DNA of 64,000 nt. Source: Antechinus flavipes. Lineage: Eukaryota. Below, in pieces: positions 3,911 to 63,769 of this stretch. The stretch covers positions 189,782,001 through 189,846,000 of the forward strand of contig NC_067401.1 in assembly GCF_016432865.1 (NCBI RefSeq). Direction: 5' to 3'. The position numbers and the translations under genes are program-made. A model generated the notes under the pieces. The model did no database searches, was not told the origin of the DNA, and saw only the letters and a list, made by a program, of their open reading frames with translations. Each line of letters starts with the position of its first letter. Position 1 is the first letter of the stretch.

Positions 3911-4135
3911 GGGCAGTTAAATGGCACAGTGGATAGAGCATTGAACCTAGAGTCAAGATCACCTAAGTTCAGATCTGCTCTCAGATAGCTATATTATCCT
4001 GGGTAAGTCACTTAACCCTGTTTGCCTCAGTTTCTTCATCCGTACAATGAACTAGAGAAGGAAATGTCAAATGATTCCAGTATCTTTGCCAAGAAAACCC
4101 CAAATGGAGTCATGAAGATTCATACACTGAAATAG
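3911..4135 (+). mobile_element. Marsupial CORE/tRNA-derived SINE (MAR1/WALLSI-like)
   Basis: Head GGGCAGTTAAATGGCACAGTGGATAGAGC, B-box-like AAGTTCAGATC, core GCCTCAGTTTCTTCATC, and tail GAGAAGGAAATG...CCAGTATCTTTGCCAAGAAAACCCCAAATGG. Confidence 0.8.
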
Positions 4136-4537
4136 TTACTTCAAAAATTTAGCAACAACAAACATTTCTCCCCTACACCACCTTAGTCTCTGGGAGAATA
4201 AGCTTGAAATTTAGCATTTATTATGCCAAATTCCAGATGTGGTACAATTACCTCATGAATTTTTCCATTTGCAAAGGTCTCAAAGGTTGTCCCAAAAATC
4301 ATTTTTTACTCCCTGAGGCATTGATACTATTCTGGTTGAGAAGATCAGAATGGATTCTGACCCCTGAATTTTTGTGACTTATTCTCTCTATTTTTCAAAA
4401 CCCCTAAGGTCAGAGATTCCACTCCCTTCAATGGATGCCATGAGCGCATGCGCTAGTATTAGTCACTGAGATTCTTAAAGTGGAAAAGGCAAAAAGAAAT
4501 TATGGCTAAAACTAATAGATCTTTTTCAATTGCTCTA

Positions 4538-5620
4538 TGAATGGGATAAACTGAGTGAAAACCTCTCATAAGAGTATGGCATTGATTTATGCCTTAATTT
4601 TAATTTGAGATTTTACAGTAATAGGTTGAGCTATAGCTAAAAGCTGCAGGTGTTCAATTATCATAGATAAACAAACATTTCCCTCTTGTCTTCTTCCCCT
4701 TTTCTCCGCCCTCCTTCCCTCCCCCTCCCCCCCTTTTCAATAGCATTTAAATACCTAATAGGTAAAGTGTGTTTTGGAGTCAATATTTAGTCTCTGGGTA
4801 AATTAGAGCTCTCCAGCCAATGGGAGAAAAAGTCAGGAGGGGTGGGGGCTTATACATTAATGATGTGGTACTAGTGATGTGAGAATTGAGATGGGGAATC
4901 CCCTCTGGTCATTGCAGGTCCAATTTGAAAGAATTAAAAAACCTGAAAATCTGAGGCAAAAGGGAATTTTATTGGCACCAAGAAGCCAGCTTTGCCAGGA
5001 AGACAGACTTCTTAGTGGCAAGTTCCTGTCAGGGAACATGGCAAAGGTTAACACTGAGAAGAGAATATCTTCACAGTGGGCAAGAGTTCTGGCAGGCAGC
5101 TGTGCCAAGAAGAGAGGTTCCTTGGCAAAGCATAATCCTGTTTCAGACTTCTGCAGAGATTTGAAGTTCAGAATTGTCTTTTATTAGCAGTTTGAGGCTT
5201 GGCTTCCAGTCAAAATTGAATGAAAATCTCTCAGTGTTGTCACTGCCCTGGGGCCTAGATTTCCAGTTGAAAAGAGATTGCTTGGAATTTTAATTCAATT
5301 GATTCAATTATTCAATAGGAATATCAGATCCAGACCTCCAACTGAATGAGACCACTTAATTGAGAGTTGGAGCTACTGAGAGTGGTCCCAGACTAATAGT
5401 CAACTCAATAGAGGGTGCAATCACATCTCTGGCCAGATAACTTGGAAGGTATGCTTTTCCTAGGGGAGAGCCTGAGACCCCAATCTCCCTCTTACAGATT
5501 AAAGAGGACTCACCCCCATCATTAGGGTCTATATAATCTTGTGTTTGCAACTTGTGCTTTGCACTCTTCTACTGACCTTATTTGTTGGGAGTTGCCCTTT
5601 CTCCTGAGATTGTAATAAGT

Positions 5621-5654
<34 letters not shown>

Positions 5655-5708
5655 TTTTTACCTTGAGAGTCTCTGATATTAATTTAGGGAGGGGGGCACT
5701 GTCCCACA
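4538..5708 (+). repeat. 5' LTR of outer ERV, split by a solo-LTR insertion
   Basis: 4538-4860 and 5522-5708 together align with 17325-17697. Confidence 0.8.
4861..5521 (+). mobile_element. Solo LTR inserted in the outer ERV 5' LTR
   Basis: Inverted termini TGATG...CATCA, ATTAAA near the 3' end, 4-bp flanks TTAA/TTAG (TSD with one mismatch; the uninterrupted 3' LTR reads CATTAGGGTC). Confidence 0.7.
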
Positions 5709-5877
5709 TAGTTTTGAAGGCTTGTTCTAGGATATTTCCTGTTCATGAGGGGGTCTCTCCCATATTGAATCTTTGGGCAGGTGTCTTCTGGGAGATTTCT
5801 CCAAGGTCCTTGTACTTCACTTGGGAACTCCCACTTTGATCAGGTAAATTCCTAAGGAGAGAAAGCTTCTACATTAG

Positions 5878-6632
5878 TGATGTGGTGCTAGTGATGTGAG
5901 AATTGAGATGGGGAATCCCCTCTGGTCAGTGCAGAAAGCAAAACTGGAAATAGGCTAGTAAAAATAGAGGATTAATTTGCTCAGGAGATAAAGCAGCTGA
6001 GAAATTTGAAATCCATCAGGTAAATTGTGCACAATCTAGACAGGGCAAGAAACTGGTGAGGAGGGGAGAGATTCTGAAGTAGTTAGAGCTGGAAAGAGGA
6101 CTTTCTCTTTGACAAGAACTGGGGAATCACCTGAGTGACTGGGATTGGTATTGGAGGTTTTTAAGCAGTTAGAGTTTGTAAAAGGCTCCCATTTCCCTTT
6201 ACTATTGAGAAATTCTAAGCAGTTAGAATTTGTATGGGTTCTCCCATTTTCCTTTGGTAAGATTGGGTGAATCCTTCATCAAAGAGGACAAGATACTGTG
6301 AACCATGGAAAAATGATGTAATAAGACTCTGTGATTCCCTGATCTTTGAGGGAGGGGAGGTCCTAGGTCAGAAAACCCTGAATTTACTGGTTCTGATTTA
6401 CAACCCCCTCCCCACCCTTTTCACCTGGCCTTGGGGAAACTCCTAAAATAATTCCTACCTTCAATTCACTTAGAGATCACTCTTTAGTTTCTGTCCTCTG
6501 GAATAATCACTACCCATAACTGACCTGGAGATTACTTCCTCAATTCATCTGGTGATCATTCCCAATCCCAGGCCATAGAAGGCTAAATAAAATTGAATTC
6601 TGTCTCCCAAATCTTTGCTAACTTCCTAATCA
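5878..6632 (+). mobile_element. Second LTR-like element sharing its first ~55 bp with 4861-5521
   Basis: Starts TGATGTGGTGCTAGTGATGTGAGAATTGAGATGGGGAATCCCCTCTGGTC. AATAAA near 6586. The 3' end (…CTAATCA) is tentative and no TSD was found. Confidence 0.5.
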
Positions 6633-9330: not shown

Positions 9331-12300
9331 TCAGTGGCACATGTAGTCAGAGATGGAATCATCTGATGTTTCTTGGGTCTTTTTCTTTGTTTCAAGGGTC
9401 TTCATCTCTTTCCAATGGACAAAGTAAATATGGCTCGTTGGCACCCATCTGATTCCTTCTCCATCTATAGAAATACAAGCAAACCCTCTCCCCCAAGCAA
9501 TTAACCTGTTTGGTTCCTTCCATTCATCACTTTCTGGATCTCTCCACATCACCTGACAATTATCTAAAGATAGTGGAGATGCTCGCACTGGGCACTCCTC
9601 TTCCAGTGAGTTATAAAACCTGTCTGCTGGATGCAGTGTATATCAAAAATAAAAAAAAAAGTGTAAAGAGCTAAATTTAAAAATTCTCTAGGGTTACCTG
9701 TGGCTCCCCCTTTCTTTTGTTTTTGGAGGAGCATCTTGATGTCTCTGTTTCTCCTCTATTACTATTGCCTGTCCTTGAGGATTACAAGATATGCCAATGG
9801 TGTGTAAAATCTGATACTGTGCACAAAAGTGTGCAAAATGTTTAGAAGTATATGCAGGTCCATTATCAGGTTTTATTGCTTGTGGTGCAGCCATAATTGC
9901 AAAAGCTTATATAAGGAATTCAGTGCCCCCTCCGGCTGTCTCTTTTGCTGCTGGTATTGCAAAAGTAAATCTTGAAAAGGTATCTACTACAACATGGATA
10001 AAAGACAGACGACCAAAAAATTTATAATGGGTCACATCCATTTGCCAAATTTCATTGGATCTCAAACCACAAGGGTTCTTCCCTGGAGGGAGTGTAGGAG
10101 TGTAGAAAGGAAGGCAAGCTGTACAGATTTTTACTATGCTCCTAGCTTCCTCTTTTGTTATCCCAAACTGCAAACATAAAGCTTGAGCAGCCTGATGTTA
10201 TTTATTTATTTATTTTATAGAGCAAAAAGTATTTTTATTTTTATTTTCTTTCTTTCTTTCTTTCTTTATTTTTTTTAGCCTGATGATATTTAGACTGAGA
10301 TTCTTGTGCTGCTTGAAACAAAAAAGTATTGGCTAACATGGTTAGAAGGCGATTTGCCTTTGAATTTCCATAAAAAATAGGACCTGGAAGTCCACTCTGT
10401 TAGAGAATGAACATGCAGGAAAGATATAAATCTTACCTGGATGCTTTCTCACTTGCTCTTGAAGTTCCTTAAAGAGCTGATATATATTAGAAGCTACAAA
10501 TTTTATTTGGGCTGTGACAATTCTTTGTACCACACCTACTGAATATGCTGAATCAGATATTATATTTAAACCTCCTAGATATTAAGAGCTAGCATGCTTA
10601 CATACAATTCATTTTGCTGAGTGGACTGAAAAGTTCTGACTACTTTCTTTATAGTTAAGTCATGAGAGTTTACAACACAAATGTTATGTTTGGATGCATC
10701 TCTAAAGATAAGTTGGTCCTTAAAGGTTTAACCTTAGAAACCTTTTCTTCAAAAATCCATTGCCAATTATGTAATAGCCAGGATATCTTTAATGAAGACC
10801 CGTGTGTAGAATTTGGAGCTGTGTCCAATAAAATTTGCCACTCTGGGATGGTTTCACAGCATACATTAATTTGTTCATTGGTTACAGAGAGGCTTGGAGA
10901 GACTTACATGAACTGATGCTAAGTGAAATGAGCAGAACCAGGAGATCATTATACACTTCAACAACAATATGAGGATGTATTCTGATGGAAGTGGATTTCT
11001 TTGACAAAGAGACCTAACTCAGTTTCAATTGATAAATGATGGACAGAAGCAACTATACCCAAAGAAAAGACACTGGGAAATGAATGTAAACTATTTGCAT
11101 TTTTGTTTTTCTTCCTGGGTTATTTTTACCTTCTGAATTCAATTCTCCCTGTGCAATAAGAGAACTATTCGGTTCTACAAACATATTTATATCTAGGATA
11201 TACTGCAACATATTTAACATACATAGGATTGCTTGCCATCTAGGGGAGGGGGTGGAGGGAGGGAGGGGAAAAATTGGAACAGAAGCGAGTGCAAGGGATA
11301 ATGTTGTTACCCTGGCATGGGTTCTGTCAATAAAAAGTTATTATAAAATAAAATAAAATAAATTGTTAATTGGTATAAAAGGTGTATATCTTGTCAGGAT
11401 TTATCCCGATAATTGTACTACTGGCTTAATGGCCTTTAATAAGATTATAGCCACAAGCACTGGGTAAGGAGTAAGGCTTTGTTCCAGTTTTGCTGGGAGG
11501 TTAACCTATTTTATCACACTGTGTCCTTGATGAAGGACTGCTGTGGATGCCTCTTTTGTAGCAAAAACTGATATTTCCAAGGGTTTCTGAGTAACTCTTT
11601 CAACCACATTGGATAAAGCCAGTTCAACTTCTCTCAAAGCCTCTTCAGCTTCTTTTGCAACCTGGCATGGTGAGTTTTAAGCACTATCTCCCCTTAAAAT
11701 GTCATATAATGATTGTAATTGATAGGTAGTTAGGGCCTAATGCTGGACACATCCATTGGATATCTCCTACCAATTTCTGAACGTCATTTAAGGTATTCAA
11801 CTTCTCTGTTCTTAAAGAAAGCTTTTGTACTGTAAGCATCTTAGGATATACTTCATATCCTAAATATTGAAAAGGAGCGTGCCTTTGAATTTTTTCTGGA
11901 GCTATATGCAATTTGGAATTCCTTAGTGTTTCTATGGTCTTTTGTAGACATGCTTCTAACATTTGCTTCTCAGGTGCACACCCCAAAGTATTGTCCATAT
12001 AATGTAATAATATAACTTTTGGAAATGTTTTTCTTACTGGAGTAAGAGCAGCAGCAACATACATTTGACACAGAGTAGGGCTATTTTTCATTCCCTGTGG
12101 CAAAACTGTCCATTCATATCTTTTATAAGGCTCACTAAATTAGTGCTGGGTACTGAAAAGGCAAATCTTTTCATATCCTCCTTATCTAGAGGGATAGAAT
12201 AGAAACACTCCTTAATGTCTATAACCCAAAGAGGCTATTCTCTAGGCAACTGAGTAGAAGATGGAAGTCCAGGCTGAAGAGTTCCCGTAGTTTCCATCTG

Positions 12301-28278: not shown

Positions 28279-29096
28279 ATGGGTCTCCCTCTGCCCTGGC
28301 TCTCTCATTACTGCTACCGGTTCCTGCTGTCCCGGATCATGGCCCGCCACATCTCTCGTAGGGTCTGCTCCCAGAATGCTGGGCCACCTACAGAAGAATT
28401 AGCTACCGAAGAGACCAGGAAGACTCTATTCCCAAACAGGGTAAGAAGGGTGAGAATGGGGACTTGCATTACTTTAGACTGGGGGAAAAGAATTAGTCCA
28501 ATCCAATCCACCAACACCCACACCCACAGTCCCCTTGGGATAGAAACATCCAATTCTCTAATCCATACTAGAGTCCTTTCCCTTCCACTCCTCCCCCAAT
28601 TCCTTCATATAGCAGAGTCCATAAAGTCCTTGAACAGGTCCCTGGTTTAGGAGTTAATTATTTGTCAGAGGGGAGGGGCAGTTTCCTTTTTTTTTTTTTT
28701 TTTTTTCAGCAAGGCCATACTGTCCCTTTCATCCAGACATGAGACCAATATCTGCCCCTAGTACCTAATCTCTTCTACTGTCCTAATATAGCAGGAGGCC
28801 AGGCCTTGATTTCAAAAGAAGGGGTAACAGAAGAAGCAGTTTTTCTCTCCAGTAAACTCTGCATCACAGCCTAGTTAAGTTCCTCTGAATCCTCGGCATC
28901 TTCCCTCCAGGGTCCAGGCCACAGAAGAGCTGAACTGGCCCAGGCAGAAGAACTGCTGGAACAACAACTAGAGCTATATCAAGCCCTGCTGGAAGGGCAA
29001 GAAGGGGCATGGGAAGCTCAAGCCCTTGTACTCAAGATCCAGAAGCTCAAGGAGCAGATGAGGCGGCACCGAGACAGCCTGAGAGGTGATGCTTGA
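28279..29096 (+). CDS. MCCD1: Mitochondrial coiled-coil domain protein 1 (2 exons: 28279-28440, 28911-29096; 115 aa)
   Basis: GT-AG phase-0 splice. Exon 2 encodes GPGHRRAELAQAEELLEQQLELYQALLEGQEGAWEAQALVLKIQKLKEQMRRH, which I recognise as MCCD1. Arg-rich N-terminal targeting-like sequence. Syntenic, tail-to-tail with DDX39B. Confidence 0.93.
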
Positions 29097-29639: not shown

Positions 29640-37301
<7,662 letters not shown>

Positions 37302-38169: not shown

Positions 38170-39060
38170 AAGAGGAGACTGTGTCCCTCCCGACCTTCTC
38201 CAGCTGGAGTAGGGCCGCTGGCGGGGAAGAGGAGGATGGAGACAAAGCGCGTGAGATTACCAGAGGGGACTCGGCGGCTGGCACACAATGGCGCCACGGC
38301 CGCCATCTTGGGTCCTCCCCTTTCGCTCCCGGCCATCCCCTCCCCCCTGGGGGGGGGTTCTTCCCTCGCGGGCGGGGCGGGAAAAGAGGCGGAAATAACG
38401 GCCCCGCAGGGGCCAGGAGGCTAAAGCATCGCTCTTGGCAGGGATATTGGGGGTCTCTTGCTATCGAATGGGCTTAGAGAAGGATGGATGGATGTGGATA
38501 AAGGCCGTGGCCGCCGCTTACCTGAGCGGGGAAGAAATGCGTCTGGTGGCGGCAGCGGCGGCGACCGACGAAAGCGGCCTCCACTTCCGGTCCCCGCGTT
38601 CCCTCTCCCCTTTCCACCCCACTCTTTCCAGGATACCAGTGCGCAGACGCGAGGAACAGGAAGCAAGGCTCGAGGACCTCCTACGAATCAACCGTCCCGC
38701 GCATTAAAGAGATGCCCTCTGGATCGCCTGATTAGATGTAAACTATGAATTTCTTTTCAGTTCTTCCGTCACCTCTCTAATCAAAGTTGTGAGGGGAAAT
38801 TCACTTTCTCTTTTTTGTAAACCCTCCCCATACCACTACCCCGGACTCTCTTCTACTATTTTGCTTTTCAGTCAGGCTTGCTTAAAGCACTGCTTTTCAC
38901 TTGGAACGCAATGAATGGGTCGCGGAAGTGGCGGAACGTTCTCCCGGCGTCCTACGACTGCCGCAGTTGCCAAGGTGACCTAGACGTAGGCTAGGCTTTA
39001 CCGGGCCTCTGTGATGGGTATGACTGCTGAGGACGTGGGATGGAAGGAAAGGGAAGTAGA
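38170..39060 (-). promoter_or_regulatory. DDX39B CpG-island promoter and non-coding exon 1 (from about 38522 upward)
   Basis: High CpG density, YY1 motif CCGCCATCTT (about 38320-38330), ETS motifs CACTTCCGG (about 38582) and CGGAAGTG (about 38922), donor CTCAG|GTAAG at 38521. Confidence 0.85.
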
Positions 39061-42964: not shown

Positions 42965-44240
42965 TCTTTTATTATTATTATTATTATAGCTTTTTATATA
43001 CAAAACATATGCATGGGTAATTTTTCAACATTGATCCTTGCAAAAACTTCTATTTCAACTTTTCCCCTCCTTCCCTCCATCCTCTCCCCTAAATGGCAGG
43101 TAATCCCATACATGTTAAATATGTTAAAGTATATGTTAAATATAATCTATGTATACATATTTATACAATTATCTTGTTGCACAAGAAAGATCAGATTTAG
43201 AAAGAAGTTAAAAATAACCTGAGAAGAAAAAACAAAAATGCAAGCAAACAATAACAGAAAGAGTGGAAATGTTATGTTGTGGTCCATACTCATTTCCTAA
43301 GTTCTTTCTCTGGGTGTAGCTGGTTCTGTTCATTACAGATCAATTGGAAGTGATTTGGATCCTTTCATTGCTTAAGAGAGCTAATTCATCAGAATTGATC
43401 ATCATGTAATATTGTTGAAGTGTATAATGATCTCCTGGTTCTGCTCATTTCACTTAGCAACGTTCATGTAAGTCTCTCCAAGTCTCTCTGTATTCATCCT
43501 GCTGGTCATTTCTTACAGAACAATAATATTCCATAATATTCATATACCACAATTTATTCAGCCATTCTCTGATTGATGGGCATCTACTCAATTTCTAGTT
43601 TCTAGCCACTATGAAAAGGGCTGCCACAAACATTTTTGCACATACGGGTCCCTTTCCCTTCTTTAATATCTCTTTGGGTTATAAGCCCAGTAGTAACACT
43701 GTTGGATCAAAGGAGATGCACAGTTTTATAACTTTTTGAGTATACTTCCAAACTGCTCTCCGGAATGGGTGGCTCCATTCACAACTCCACCAACAATGCA
43801 TCAGTGTCCCAATTTTCCCACATCCCCTCCAACATTTGTCATTATTTTTTCCTGTCCCCTTAGTCAATCTGACAGGTGTGTAGTGGTATCTTAGAGTTGT
43901 CTTAATTTGCATTTCTCTGATCAACAATGATTTGGAACACCTTTTCCTATGGGTAGAAAGTTTCAATTTCATCATCTGAAAATTGTTCATATCCTTTGAC
44001 CATTTGTCAATTGGAGAATGGCTTGATTTCTTATAAATTAGAGTCAGTTCTCTATATATTTTAGAGATGAGATCTTTATAAAAACCTTTAGCTGTAGAAA
44101 TGTTTTCCCAGTTTATTGCTTCCCTTCTAATCCTATCCACATTAGATTTATTTGTACAAAAGCTTTTTAACTTTATATAATCGAAATTTTCTATTTTGTG
44201 ATCAGTAATGACCTCTAGATCTTCTTTGGTCACAAATTCT
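42965..44240 (-). mobile_element. 5'-truncated LINE-1 (ORF2 C-terminus plus 3'UTR)
   Basis: ORF 43679-44233 contains REMQIKTTLRYHYTPVR and KCWRGCGKIGTLMHCWW. The antisense tail is T/ATT-rich at about 42965-42995. Confidence 0.93.
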
Positions 44241-44331
44241 TTCCATTTGAGATATTTCTATTTCTGTCTACTTGTTTCTTCATTTGTAAACTGAAGATAA
44301 TAGCATCTACTTACAAGAGTTGTTGTGATAA

Positions 44332-45554: not shown

Positions 45555-45939
45555 TTCCCCCCTCAAGCAGTTAAAACTTAAAGAGAGAAAAAAAAAAAAT
45601 TGGGGCAGAGTTTTTTATTGAGGCAGAATTGAAGAGTTCCTCCTTCAAGGATTTTCTGAGTTCAGGGGTCCCCTCTTCAGTATGATTAACGATTACAAGT
45701 CTGAGGCCAGGTTTGAACTCTAGAACTTTATCGACTCCCTGAGCTCCTCCTCCCTCTCTTCTGTCTCTTCCTCATTTCCAGTCCTTTGTTCAGTTTGTAA
45801 TTCTGTCTCATTTCTCCCCACATCCACCTTCTGCCAGTCCTTTGTGTCTTCTTCCCGGGTTCCTTTCTCTCCAGATTTTTCTCCCCTCCCCAGCCTCCAT
45901 TTTCCTCTTTATTTATTTAATTAATTAAAATTTAAAAGG

Positions 45940-46450
45940 CCAGACCCCAGCCCAACCAGCGAAGGCCGTCGGTGGTGAAATCACAGCAAAACTGTTCATC
46001 ATTCAAGCTTCTCCATTTCACGCCCCAGCCAAAGAGGAAAGCCCCTCCTCTTTCCCTACTCCTCCCAGGCCAGCGGAACCTTTGTCTCGAGCTCCGCGTT
46101 GTTTGTCCGGAACTGACAATGAAACAACTAGGTCGTTGTTGCTGTCCGCCTTGTTCTCCCCTAGCTCCTTTCCGATTCGTTTCCGCCCTTTTCCCTTCTG
46201 GCAGCCCGGCCTGAGGCGGGACTCCGGCACAGTTTAGCTGTGTTTAAGAGGTCTTATCTTCTCTCCACCGAGCTTCAGACAAAGAGTTTACCGCTCTTTT
46301 AGGCCTGGTGTTGCGATGATTTCTGCAAAACGATCGAGGGCCTAGAATTCCCAACTCTCCTGGAGACCAAGTCTTTTCACCTGACAATCATATTCCTTAT
46401 CCGTCATGTGATTGGGATTGGGCTAGATCTGGAGTCCTTAACTTCTGGAG
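45940..46450 (+). promoter_or_regulatory. CpG-rich island, probable NFKBIL1 promoter/exon-1 region
   Basis: Local CpG enrichment with ETS-like CCGGAA/GCGGAA motifs about 0.8-1.3 kb upstream of NFKBIL1 exon 2. A coding exon 1 could not be identified. Confidence 0.6.
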
Positions 46451-47224
46451 TGGGGTGGATCTATTCGGCTATCTCGGAATAACATTTAAAAATTATTAAA
46501 GAAAAGACTAAATTTCAGTTCGATGTTAGTGAAAATAGATTTCATTTTCCCCGACTCCAGAAAGCAGACATTTAAGGGCCCTACTCACTATTAGGGCTTT
46601 GCAAGGTAATATTCCCTGGTCAATTGGGACAGCCCTAGGGGGTCTCTCCTGCCTCCAACCTGAGGAGCCCTGAAGGAGGACTTGGGCCCTGCCCACTCAT
46701 AAAATATAAATATCAAAATATAAACAGATTATTATCAAATTAGGTGATCACAAAATCCATATTCTGAAGTTTTACCACTAGCCCAATGTTCCTCTACTAA
46801 AAAGATAATCAGTCTTCTTTATTGTACTTTCTGAACGTGACTAATGCGGAAATATGTTTTGCATGACTCCATATATAAATGGGTATCGAATTTCTTGCCT
46901 TTTCAATGGATTAAGGTGGAACTGAAGAGAGGGAGAGAATTTGGAATGGAAAATAAAATGACAAAACTATGTAATAGGAAAAAAGATTGTACTTTTTTAC
47001 GTAAAGACCCCCAAATAATTTTATCCCCATTCCAAAATTATATAGCTACTTAGCATAGTATCCTATAGGACTATACTTAAGTTTTGAGAAGACAGTTTTT
47101 ATTTTAAAACAACATGAAAGGTAGAAGTGTATAAAAGTGGAAATAGGGAGAATAGATGGGAAAGAGAGCATGGAGCTTATATTCTCTTCTGATTTTAATT
47201 GTTTTATTTTTTTCTCTTCTCCAA

Positions 47225-49435
47225 TACCCATCATGGGTTCTTCCTCTTAACAACATAGACATGAGCCATGTTTCAGAAGATATCTTTCTACAAGACATCT
47301 GAGCAAGGCTCAATCCCTCTTTCAACACCACCCAAGGCTGGATATTAGATGCTGGAGAACCACCACCACTCCCATCAAGCCTGTGCTTGCCATGATATCT
47401 CTACCCTTCAACTACTACTTTACTTTGGTGCTGATCCCACTTACCAGGACTGCCATGGGAATATTGTTGTGCATGCTGCTGTTCTTCAAGGTCCTAGTGG
47501 TGAGTCCACCCCTTATAAGGATAGCTTTGAAAGTGTCAGACAGTAATCTAAAATGAATCTAAGATGAAAGCAAAACCCTTGAGTTGCCTGGTTATGAATG
47601 AATTTCTTTGGCAAATGGGAATAATAATGATAGTTACCCTATCTATAGGATTTGTTGTGAAGGTCAAAATGGATAACCTATAACAGTTGTAAACATGAAC
47701 AAATAATATGTATGTAGCTGTGTTTATATATAATATATATGTATATAAATACACATATAAAGATTTCTATCCATGATGGGTTTATATATATTTATGACTA
47801 TATATATATACACATATATATGCATATATATATATTCACACATATATACTTATAATATGGATCCAAGATGGCACTCAAATAAGATTTTTACATCCATTCA
47901 TTTAGCTCCTACTCTTGCTTGCTTTCAAGATAGCAGTCATTTTTCTAATCTGCCTTTCCTGTCCAGATCTATTTTTTTCCCCAGTTCCCACTATTTTGCC
48001 CATGATAATGGTCTTCTGGCTAAAAGTTGGTACCCAAATGTGTAATTTTTCTTACTCTCCAGAGTGCCTATCCTCCCTCCTCCCCCCCCCCCCCATTATG
48101 TAATTTCTCTAGTGCCCAGATAAGACAGGTATGTGGTACAACACATAGAGTTCTGGGTCTGGAGTCAGGAAAACCAATCTTCCTGAATTCAAATATGGCC
48201 TCAGACACTTATTAGTGTGACTCTGGGCAAGTCACTTAATTTTGTTTCCTTCAGCTTTCTATTTAAATGAGCTGGAGAAGGAAATGGCAGTCTCTTTAAA
48301 GTGATTGAACAACAATAACAAAACCCAGGTAGTAACTATCAGTATTCTTATGAGATGAAAGCCACAGCAAACAATTTTGCCCTTTGACAATTTTAACCCT
48401 TGCCAACAGCCTACAAGGACTTCTTGCCTCCGATGACAAAATGTCCCACTTCCATGAAAATGAAGGATAAACAAGGAGAGACCTGAGGGGAACTTCTGGG
48501 CTGGAAAACCTCTCCAGAGAGTATTTGTAGAAATGAGGAAGAATCTTATAAAGAGAGAAAATGGAGACAAAAGCTTCAGGAGGAACTAGAGGATTAGTGG
48601 CAGGAGATGCTGGGGAGGTTTGAAGGTAAGAAAATCCCAACTAATGCCCTATAGGTATTTCAGTGGTTCCTCATCTCCCCCACTTTCCATGTCTTATTGT
48701 TTAGCTATTCCACATTAATTCCCATCCCTTTAATTTTTTTTGTCTCCATATCTTTTGACTCGCATCTGTCTCCTGACTATCTTCTGTCTGACCTTATTGT
48801 TTCTCTTCCTTCTCCCTCCTTAAGCCTTGCCATTTATATACCCATTGTTCCTTAGGTGATGAGGATGCTGCCTTAGATATCCCAGAGTCTGAGTCCTATT
48901 CTGTATGGACTGAATGTCTGGTCCAAGAACCTGCCCAGAAATAACGACCTCAACAAGCAACAGAGAGAGTCCAGCATCCAAAAAAAAATGTATGTCAGCC
49001 TCCTACCATGCTGGCAACAAGAAAATGAATGTCAGCTATGCCAAGAGCAAGCCCAGCCAAGGAAGAGATGAGGGAAAGCGAACTAAGAATGGCCAGGAAG
49101 CCAGGGGGCATTGTAGAGGAGACTGTAACAGGACAAAGCCCAAGAGAAACCTCACCAAGAGAGGGAACAGATTTTGGTGTTTGGGAGCTATACCCTGGCA
49201 CTGCCTTGGAAGGAAGGTCCCTGAGGCAATGGCAGCATCCTAGTAGCTGGGGACCCCACCCACAGATTGGAGAATCTTAAGGAAATATTTGAGGGTCCAG
49301 CAGGTTCAGTGGCATCCTGACCGATGCCTACAGAGATTTGGGGGCCAAATTGAGGCCAAAGAAAGGGAAAAAGTAATAGAAATTGTGACAGCTCTGTCTC
49401 AAGTCCTCAGTCAATATGCAGAAGGCCTAAAATGA
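47225..49435 (+). pseudogene. NFKBIL1: NFKBIL1 (IkBL) unitary pseudogene: exon 2 ~47225-47499, exon 3 48410-48625, exon 4 48856-49435
   Basis: Recognisable peptides FRRYLS, DAGEPPPL, HQACACHD..LLL..GADP..QD.HG, WRQKLQEELED, PEAMAA, LRKYLRVQQVQWHPDR..QRF..QIE, VTALSQ, EGLK*. Lesions: TAA 47248-50, two +1 frameshifts in exon 2, TGA 48484-86, TAG 48595-97, TAA near 48942, further frameshifts in exon 4, and no AG at the exon 2 acceptor. Confidence 0.93.
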
Positions 49436-55908: not shown

Positions 55909-56759
55909 ATGACCTCATCTGGAGTCCTATGCCTTCTGGGGGCACTGAGCCTCCATGCGCTTTGGCTGCAGCCACCAGAGGCTCAGGTGAGAAGCAACAG
56001 GACTGGGGGATAATTTGGGGATTGAGAGCTTAAAGGGGCAAGAAAGAAATCTTGGCCCTCTGGTACCTTCTTAATCATGTTCTTTCATAGGGGGCTCCCA
56101 ATCTTGATAACTCCCACTCATCTAGCCCAGCCCTACCCCAGACAACTCAACAGTTCAGCCAGAAGAGCCTCATAAGAGACATTCTCAAACCAGCTGCCCA
56201 TCTTGTTGGTAAGAATCTAGATGTTCTACCTTCTTCACTCCCCTCATAGACCCAAGCAACCAGCTCCCAGATTTCTCCTCCCTTAGTGGCCTGTATATGT
56301 ATTCTCCCCGGTCCCGTAACATTCCCTGACTTCTGTGTCTCTCCCCTAGGAGACTTCAGCGCCAAGGACTCTATACGTTGGAGAGCAAGCACAGATCACG
56401 CTTTCCTCCGACATGGCTTTTCTCTAAGGAACAACTCCCTCTTGGTCCCCACAAGCGGCCTCTACTTCATTTACTCCCAAGTTGTCTTCTCAGGAGCCAG
56501 TTGTTCTCAGGTTACTCCCACCCCGCTCTATTTGAGCCATGAGGTTCTCCTCTTCTCCACCAAATACCAAGTTCATGTACCCCTTCTGAGTGCTCAAAAG
56601 TCTGTGTGCCCAGGGATTCGAGGATCCTGGATGAAATCAATCTACCAGGGAGCTGTGTTCCTGCTCACTCAGGGAGATCAGCTATCCACTCATACAGATG
56701 GTATCTCTCACCTGCTTCCGTCCCCTAGTAGTGTCTTTTTGGGGGCCTTTGCACTATAA
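55909..56759 (+). CDS. LTA: Lymphotoxin-alpha (coding exons 55909-55986, 56091-56208, 56350-56759; 201 aa)
   Basis: GT-AG junctions, 606 nt. Signal peptide, [69 protein letters not shown]. 3'UTR ARE near 57165-57200 and AATAAA at 57410-57415. Confidence 0.98.
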
Positions 56760-58623: not shown

Positions 58624-60267
58624 ATGAGCACAGAGAGCATGATCCGAGACGTGGAACTAGCAGAAGAGGCACTCCAAAGGAAGGCAAGGGGGCCCCAAGG
58701 CCCTGGACGCTGCCTCTGCCTCACACTTATCTCCTTCCTTTTTCTTGCTGGGGCTACTATTCTCTTCTGCCTGCTGCACTTCGGTGTGATAGGACCTCAG
58801 AAGGAAGAGGTGAGATGCCTCACAATATTTGGCCATAAAAACAGGAACAGAAAGGAATTGGGAAAGGCAGGATAGATGGGGAAAGAGAGATAAGGATGTA
58901 AAGAAAAAGAGAGAGAAAAATAATAATAGAGTGATGGGGAAATTACAGTAATGAAAATAGAAAAGAAAAAGAATAATGGAAAGGAAGAAAGAGGGGGAGA
59001 ACTAAAGAGAAATATAAATGGGGAGATAGAAAGAGAAAGATGGAATAGGGAAGAAAGATATGAGAGAAAAGAGACAAGATGAGAATTATGAGAGGCATAT
59101 GTAGGTTCTTCTAAATATACATTCTAACCTCTGTCTTTTTAACTTTTTGTCCATAATTCATCATTGATCTCTTCTTTTTTCGTTCTTCTCTAGGAGCAAG
59201 ATGCCTTTCGTGACATGAAACCTTTGACTCAGAGAGTCAGTAAGTGTCCCTTGTTTACTATCCCAATCTCTTAAACCCTCATTTTCAAGTGGGATATACC
59301 TGGTTTGAGGCTGGTAATAGGATGAGGGAACAGATATTAGGGGACAGGAAGCATCTCTGAATTTTGGTGGGGAATGGCAGAGAGGAATGAAAGAGAGCTT
59401 AAGTTCAGTTTTTAACTTTCATTTCTTCCTTCTCTTTTCTCTCCCATTTTAGGATCTTGTCTCAGTGAAAGTGACAAGCCTGTAGCTCATGTTGTAGGTA
59501 ATTATCTGAAATTTTGGAAATGGGGCCAAATGGGGCCTGGAATCAGAGAATGGGCTAAGTCAATATGGAACTTTGGGGATAAAACAGAACCTATAGGAGA
59601 AGAAATATTAGAAAGGAAGGAAGGGGGAGAGGGTGGAAATGAACTGGATGGCTAGAACTGGAAGAAAAGGATGAAGAGGAAAGAAAGAATTCAAGGGATA
59701 AGATTCTATGGGGATGGAAAGAACCTGAGGGATATGACACAAAGAATGTCTTGAATTTTAGAAATAAGTTATGGGGAACAAAATGTGGAAGATGGAATTC
59801 AAAAGAAGCATGTGGATTTAACTTTTTCTTCCTCTTTCCCTACAGCTAATCCCAAGGCAGAGGGGCAGCTCCAGTGGTTGAATAGGAGTGCCAATGCTCT
59901 CCTGAATAATGGCATGGAACTGAAAGACAACCAGCTGGTGGTGCCTGCCACTGGGCTCTACCTGGTCTACTCCCAGCTCCTTTTCAAGGGAGAAGATTGT
60001 GCCAGCGAACCCCTGTTCCTCACTCATACCATCTCCCGGGTTTCATTGTCCTACCAACACAAAGTCAGCCTTCTTGCTGCCATCAAGAGTCCGTGCCAGA
60101 AGGCAACACAAGGAGCTAGGGAAGCTAATCCCTGGTATGAACCAATCTACCTGGGGGGTGTCTTCCAGCTTGAAAAAGGTGATAAGCTCAGTTCTGACAC
60201 CAACTATCCAAAATATCTTGACTTAGCTGAGTCTGGCCAGGTCTATTTTGGGATCATTGCTCTTTGA
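58624..60267 (+). CDS. TNF: Tumour necrosis factor (exons 58624-58809, 59194-59239, 59453-59497, 59846-60267; 232 aa)
   Basis: GT-AG junctions, 699 nt. [79 protein letters not shown]. Confidence 0.99.
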
Positions 60268-62944: not shown

Positions 62945-63735
62945 TTCTTTCTTTTTTTTTTTTAATAATTTTTTATTGATAGAACCCATGCCAGGGTAAT
63001 TTTTACAGCATTATCCCTTGCATTCACTTCTGTTCCGATTTTTCCCCTCCCTCCCTCCACCCCTTCCCCGAGATGGCAAGCAGTCCTTTACATGTTGAAT
63101 GGGTTGCAGTATATCCTAGATACAATATATGTGTGCAGAACCGAATAGTTTTCTTGTTGCACAGGGAGAATTGAATTCAGAAGGTATAAATAACCCGGGA
63201 GGAAAAACATAAATGCAAGCAGTTTATATTCATTTCCAGTGTTCTTTCTCTGGGTGTAGCTGCTTCTGTCCATCTTTGATCAATTAAGGCTCTCTTTATC
63301 AAAGAGGTCCACTTCCATCAGAATACATCCTCAAATAGTATCATTGTTGAGGTATATAATGATCTCCTGGTTCTGCTCATTTCACTCAGCATCAGTTCAT
63401 GTAAGTCTCGCCAGTCCTCTCTGTATTCATCCTGCTGGTCGTTCCTTACAGAACAATAATATTCCATAACGTTCATATACCACAATTTACTCAACCATTC
63501 TCCAATTGATGGACATCCTTTCATTTTCCAGCTTCTAGCCACTACAAACAGGACTGCCACAAACATTTTGGCACATACAGGTCCCTTTCCCTTCTCTTTG
63601 GGGTATAAGCCCAGTAGAAACACTGCTGGATCAAAGGATATGCACAGCTTGATAACTTTTTGAGCATAGTTCCAAATTGCTTTCCAGAATGGCTGGATGT
63701 GTTCACAATTCCACCAACAATGTATCAGTGTTCTC
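62945..63735 (-). mobile_element. 5'-truncated LINE-1 (ORF2 end plus 3'UTR)
   Basis: ORF 63318-63623 LLGLYPKE...MFVAVLFVVARSWK...CPSIGEWLSKLWY, poly(T) at the left end. Confidence 0.92.
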
Positions 63736-63769
63736 CCCAGTTTCTTAGGGAAATCATACCCAGAGAATT

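Follow-up and report, generated by a model that had tools for sequence, protein, structure and literature searches.

A probable unitary pseudogene of NFKBIL1 between ATP6V1G2 and LTA in dasyurid marsupials

Whether NFKBIL1, the gene for IkBL, is functional or a relic at its ancestral position in the MHC class III region of Antechinus flavipes was the question raised by a 64-kb stretch of its genome (hereafter the window), in which an initial annotation made from the sequence had read NFKBIL1 as a dead gene. In human, a review describes the protein as inhibiting NF-kB in innate immunity (PMC6028572), and PMC10082069, citing An et al. (2013), describes it as regulating the alternative splicing of immune genes. 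The gene is conserved in the class III inflammatory region from frog to mammals, including human; the wallaby gene has three exons and encodes 358 amino acids, with 77% identity between the wallaby and opossum genes, both of which are intact (Deakin et al., 2006; PMC1654159). Not all vertebrates have NFKBIL1, and its gains and losses have been tested against those of PRDM9 (PMC8892340). The reading that we favour, at a probability of about 0.9, is that the syntenic NFKBIL1 orthologue is a non-processed unitary pseudogene of the dasyurid lineage. On this reading, NFKBIL1 would have been disabled before A. flavipes and the Tasmanian devil (Sarcophilus harrisii) diverged, each lineage would then have added lesions of its own while the sequence came to drift at the rate of introns, and both dasyurids would lack IkBL.

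Searches of the window by tblastn with the intact NFKBIL1 proteins of Dromiciops and Trichosurus identified a single copy. Residues 1–354 were covered in three exon blocks in shifting frames (E values from 2e-15 to 7e-55), and the sequence at 47.2–49.4 kb could be read as NFKBIL1 only with frame hops. The relic consists of three coding exons on the plus strand, the same strand as LTA, in the syntenic slot between ATP6V1G2 and LTA/TNF. Its introns of 910 and 230 nt interrupt the coding sequence at phase-1 junctions identical to those of Dromiciops. A 62-amino-acid stop-free C-terminal piece (49247–49432), searched against 1.8 billion representative proteins, retrieved NFKBIL1 proteins, the top match being devil protein P0001 with 85% identity (E 4.8e-21). 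Pfam analysis of a 65-amino-acid piece (47349–47543) gave sub-threshold scores of 20.6 bits for Ank_4 (cut-off 22.7; E 5.7e-4) and 17.4 bits for Ank (cut-off 21.1), which is what a degraded single piece should give. The order of genes in the window is MCCD1, DDX39B (-), ATP6V1G2 (-), relic (+), LTA (+) and TNF (+); it is identical in the devil locus (L001), and both the devil and the Dromiciops loci are collinear with the window. The tblastn blocks and the synteny thus agree with the initial annotation, which had described three exons at the syntenic position with recognisable motifs. A processed pseudogene was ruled out, since the introns are kept and the position is syntenic.

Lesions were scored against the Dromiciops codon frame by frameshift-aware protein-to-DNA alignment and by a three-way codon alignment of window, devil and Dromiciops DNA. 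The intact reference was the Dromiciops locus L002 (CDS 4001–4265, 5172–5399, 5655–6226), Dromiciops being the sole source of intact outgroup DNA. Relative to this CDS, the relic contains four premature stops and eight to nine frameshifting indels in total (Table 1). Both the ATG at 47233 and the ancestral TGA at 49433 are retained in the window, and four of four internal splice sites are canonical GT/AG. Translation from the ancestral ATG stops after five residues, and no downstream ORF is common to the window and the devil. Further changes leave the frame intact: in both window and devil the second coding exon has lost 3 nt at one site and 9 nt at another and the third has lost 3 nt at each of two sites, and the WHPDRF motif has become WHPDRC in the window (49311–49328). 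The codon alignment placed all four stops at exactly the coordinates read by the initial annotation and likewise recovered the two +1 frameshifts of its 'exon 2'; the additional frameshifts that it had noted in its 'exon 4' comprised one +5 and six -1 events in the last coding exon, and the change from DRF to DRC was seen in the alignment. One correction concerns its exon numbering: the marsupial gene has three coding exons, and the ATG lies inside that 'exon 2'. The first coding exon is the equivalent of human exon 2.

Table 1. Positions of the NFKBIL1 relic, its disabling lesions, its 5' region and neighbouring genes in the 64-kb window
Feature	Position	Strand	Characteristics
DDX39B, open collinear exons (mapped part)	30049-37200	-	Pfam tiling; last exon below 30049
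ATP6V1G2, intact	42094-42014, 41753-41652, 41170-41000	-	tblastn with the Dromiciops 118-amino-acid product
Putative NFKBIL1 promoter and non-coding exon 1	45743-46559	+	Weakened CpG island; collinearity with Dromiciops
Polypyrimidine tract upstream of ATG	47190-47232	+	Dromiciops acceptor AG absent; alignment
Relic, first coding exon	47233-47499	+	N-terminus and ankyrin repeat; GT donor at 47500
Codon-6 stop	47248		TAA in window, TAG in devil; common to both
+1 T insertion	~47346		First coding exon; common to devil
+1 C insertion	~47371		First coding exon; window only
Relic, second coding exon	48410-48625	+	AG acceptor and GT donor retained in window
TGA stop	48484		Second coding exon; common to devil
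TAG stop	48595		Second coding exon; common to devil
Relic, third coding exon	48856-49435	+	Original TGA terminator at 49433-49435
CGA to TAA stop	48942		Third coding exon; common to devil
+5 A insertion in A-run	~48981		Third coding exon; window only
Five -1 deletions	~49010, 49056, 49078, 49238, 49249		Third coding exon; window only
-1 deletion in C-run	~49254		Third coding exon; common to devil
LTA, intact, 201 amino acids	55909-55986, 56091-56208, 56350-56759	+	Canonical splice sites
TNF, open exons	58624-60267 (ATG 58624; last exon 59846-60267)	+	Pfam

Comparison with the devil locus separated old lesions from recent ones. Substitutions between the window and the devil amount to ~5.4% across the relic region, and the two are therefore different species represented by independent assemblies. 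Both have six disabling lesions at identical positions, four of them stops created by substitution and two of them indels. Seven others are found in the window only (one +1, one +5 and five -1), and three to four in the devil only, where a -2 deletion lies immediately before the TAA, CGA has become TGA within WHPDRF, the second coding exon has lost its acceptor (CAG to TGG) and the first donor has changed from GTGAGT to GTGATT. The only devil NFKBIL1 model, in GenBank (KAM9002966.1; 196 amino acids, labelled 'LOW QUALITY PROTEIN') derives from this orthologous relic, which has the six shared lesions, is without the seven window-specific indels and has lesions of its own. The model skips the TGA in WHPDRF; its annotation as a protein is a mis-annotation, and the underlying DNA shows a pseudogene.

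The same comparison bears on the explanation that the gene is intact and that faulty sequencing or assembly has produced its stops and frameshifts. In favour of this, the window-only +5 insertion falls in a homopolymeric A-run, and consensus error could conceivably account for some of the single-base deletions seen in the window alone. Against it stand the four stops and two indels, which recur at the same sites in the separately assembled genome of another species, the neighbouring genes of the window, which are without frame errors, and the heavy replacement of otherwise invariant amino acids in the relic. The shared lesions therefore exclude assembly error and place the inactivation before the window–devil split, and we consider the probability that the gene is intact beneath such errors to be negligible. 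The initial annotation had read the locus as an old, lineage-specific loss rather than an assembly error and had proposed a check for disabling mutations shared across related species; the six lesions shared with the syntenic locus of a second species answer both points in its favour.

Full-length orthologues were retrieved from Trichosurus, koala, Dromiciops, tammar, Monodelphis and bilby (six species of five orders), as well as from echidna, and a shorter predicted isoform (310 amino acids) from wombat. The intact marsupial genes of Dromiciops (P0142), Trichosurus (P0139), tammar (P0143), bilby (P0152) and opossum (P0148) have the same slot, exons and phase-1 junctions as the relic. Their proteins are open, 354–359 amino acids long and share 78–88% mutual identity, whereas the window copy contains stops and frameshifts and its conceptual translation is 61–68% identical to them. 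Two parts of intact NFKBIL1 can still be recognised in the relic, the ankyrin segment and, at the C-terminus, the WHPDRF...VTALSQ block. The loss is thus specific to dasyurids and not general among marsupials, as judged from two dasyurid species that are perhaps fairly close relatives; to speak of a family-wide loss would be an extrapolation. The bilby protein has 35 lineage-specific changes, compared with 34 in opossum and 14–20 in the diprotodonts and Dromiciops; these changes may reflect a relaxation of constraint that was already under way in the lineage from which bandicoots and dasyurids descend.

The pattern of substitution is that of a sequence drifting neutrally since the window and devil lineages split. 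Differences between the two were distributed over the ancestral codon positions as 14/24/19 (chi-square p = 0.27), with no excess at third positions, and divergence in the former exons (5.6%) was similar to that in the introns (5.2%; Fisher p = 0.70). In the intact LTA gene, by contrast, the corresponding counts were 5/4/10 and no indels were found. The NG86 dN/dS between window and devil was 0.61 and not 1, from small counts (16.5 synonymous and 38.5 non-synonymous), and transition bias may be expected to depress this value. At residues invariant in the other marsupials, 19–20% are changed in the relic, compared with 2–10% in each intact species when left out in turn, in line with the heavy substitution noted in the initial annotation.

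At the 5' end of the relic, the aligned sequences read ...TTTTCTCAG/TCCAAG... in Dromiciops, ...CTCTTC/TCCAAT... in the window and ...CTCTTT/TCCAAT... in the devil. In Dromiciops, a CAG thus closes the polypyrimidine tract 13 nt upstream of the ATG; the window has TTC there and the devil TTT. A predicted opossum isoform (X2) joins an upstream exon just before the ATG, suggesting that intact marsupials use this acceptor. The loss of a splice acceptor proposed by the initial annotation is thus partly borne out: the AG is absent in both dasyurids, but the acceptor is a putative one, and all internal sites of the window copy are canonical. Side by side with the predicted opossum isoform, an open frame in the CpG island at the 5' end of DDX39B (38260–38470, +) resembles its N-terminal extension (tblastn 68% identity over 19 amino acids, E 1e-4; GRGGK.GGNNGPAG by eye), and the opossum model may start at the promoter on the DDX39B side and read across ATP6V1G2.

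Further upstream, Dromiciops has a CpG island 1–1.5 kb before the NFKBIL1 ATG (GC 0.60–0.65, observed/expected CpG ~1.0). The collinear segment of the window, a putative promoter, has a GC content of 0.49–0.54 and a CpG observed/expected ratio of 0.76–0.86, and the devil keeps a strong island there (GC 0.65, ratio 0.93). The island is also the fastest-diverging part of the locus, differing by 14–19% between devil (L001:7392–7846) and window (45900–46400) compared with ~5% nearby. When changes in this segment were polarised with Dromiciops, the window lineage showed 28 strong-to-weak and 4 weak-to-strong changes and the devil lineage 55 weak-to-strong and 10 strong-to-weak, counts that are noisy as the alignment to Dromiciops is only ~64% identical; the devil pattern is like that of GC-biased gene conversion.

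These features have to be weighed for a second alternative, in which the locus still yields a functional product of another kind, either a spliced non-coding RNA or a short peptide from an internal ATG. An ATG at 47349 would give ~76 amino acids with one ankyrin repeat, and the four GT/AG sites kept in the window, together with the CpG island, weakened here and strong in the devil, could serve a transcript. However, the exons evolve at the intron rate, in the devil the second coding exon has lost its acceptor, the internal ORF does not extend to the devil because the second +1 insertion is missing there, and the putative 5' acceptor AG is absent in both species. We give such residual function only a slight chance, and the pseudogene is presumably not expressed.

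The genes on either side of the relic are preserved. Compared with Dromiciops, the three ATP6V1G2 exons showed 100%, 91% and 91% identity and no stops. The last exon of LTA, a gene without indels relative to the devil, matched positions 2–127 of the 127 in the Pfam TNF profile (E 1.4e-33), and that of TNF positions 1–127 of 127 (E 4.6e-36); successive exons of DDX39B tiled the DEAD profile from 2 to 165 and Helicase_C from 15 to 103. With open exons and full or tiled Pfam profiles, all four neighbours are clean, as the initial annotation had it; they remain under constraint, and the cluster is intact apart from NFKBIL1.

Other features of the window were recorded alongside. Two copies of the C/D-box snoRNA SNORD83 lie in DDX39B introns (35833–35908, -, 76.8 bits; 33794–33870, -, 55.3 bits); the presence of SNORD83 inside BAT1 introns is a known arrangement in other mammals. 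Upstream of DDX39B, an open segment with an MCCD1-like coiled coil (28875–29093, +) fits class III synteny. Long stop-free segments on the minus strand at 9334–12139 are integrase-like and reverse-transcriptase-like and have the look of retroelement remnants, and LINE ORF2-like stop-free segments were found at 43682–44257 (-) and 63321–63767 (-). The element at 43.7 kb helps to widen the gap between ATP6V1G2 and the relic, which measures 5.1 kb compared with 2.8 kb in Dromiciops.

If the syntenic copy is dead, a duplicate or retrocopy at another site could still supply the function, in which case the loss would not be unitary. The sequence examined was 64 kb here and 21 kb of the devil genome, which leaves room for such a copy. 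The relic, however, is the original copy and not a duplicate, because it occupies the ancestral position and retains its introns, and annotated NFKBIL1 was retrieved from seven other marsupials and echidna but from no dasyurid. A full-length NFKBIL1 query of the protein collections returned no full-length dasyurid protein, the devil model used as a query matched no dasyurid sequence there but itself, and the 109-amino-acid out-of-frame ORF at 48914–49240, used as a query for dasyurid transcripts or other assemblies, gave no match. None of the NFKBIL1 matches in Logan / ENA was marsupial. A compensating copy is in our view very unlikely, and these dasyurids probably have no other functional copy; the support for the unitary status of the loss is indirect.

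The age of the loss was approached in two ways, which disagree. A crude dating from lesion counts placed inactivation ~1.1 split-times before the window–devil split. Parsimony assigned 54 amino-acid changes to the shared stem and 12 to each tip; dating from these changes gave at least 2.8 split-times (bootstrap lower bound), with a point estimate that exceeds the stem and with saturated NG86 dS values, and under a crude clock the 54 changes exceed the expectation for a fully neutral stem. Together these results suggest that inactivation, or relaxation of constraint, took place well before the split. We lean slightly towards the view that constraint was lost tens of millions of years ago, in the early part of the dasyuromorph stem, because stem changes number 54 compared with 12 per tip and because the number of shared lesions (six) is similar to that of lineage-specific ones (seven in the window, three to four in the devil). 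On that dating every living dasyurid (devil, quolls, antechinuses and dunnarts), and possibly the numbat and thylacine, would be an IkBL knockout.

Lineage-specific gene loss is commonplace, and a unitary pseudogene is an ordinary kind of event. The NFKBIL1 case itself appears to be unreported: literature searches on the gene in marsupials and dasyurids turned up no description of its loss in dasyurids. In the same region, opossum has no NCR3, a gene that is a pseudogene in mouse, and no LST1 was found in marsupials (Deakin et al., 2006; PMC1654159). In those losses, as here, one immune-related gene has decayed or is missing while the flanking class III order is conserved; unlike NCR3 and LST1, NFKBIL1 was reported as conserved by Deakin et al. 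(2006).

The 'LOW QUALITY PROTEIN' model of the devil is the only trace of the loss, and its mis-annotation is flagged here. If the favoured reading is true, the devil and its relatives are natural knockouts of a regulator of NF-kB and of splicing, offering a natural experiment on the dispensability of NFKBIL1 and, to immunologists who study the devil and other dasyurids, a concrete difference beside LTA and TNF, one that may have immunological consequences. If the early-stem loss is also true, it may have some relevance to inflammation and cancer in dasyurids, a link to phenotype that is pure speculation, and a whole mammal radiation would carry out NF-kB/TNF control and IkBL-dependent splicing without IkBL.
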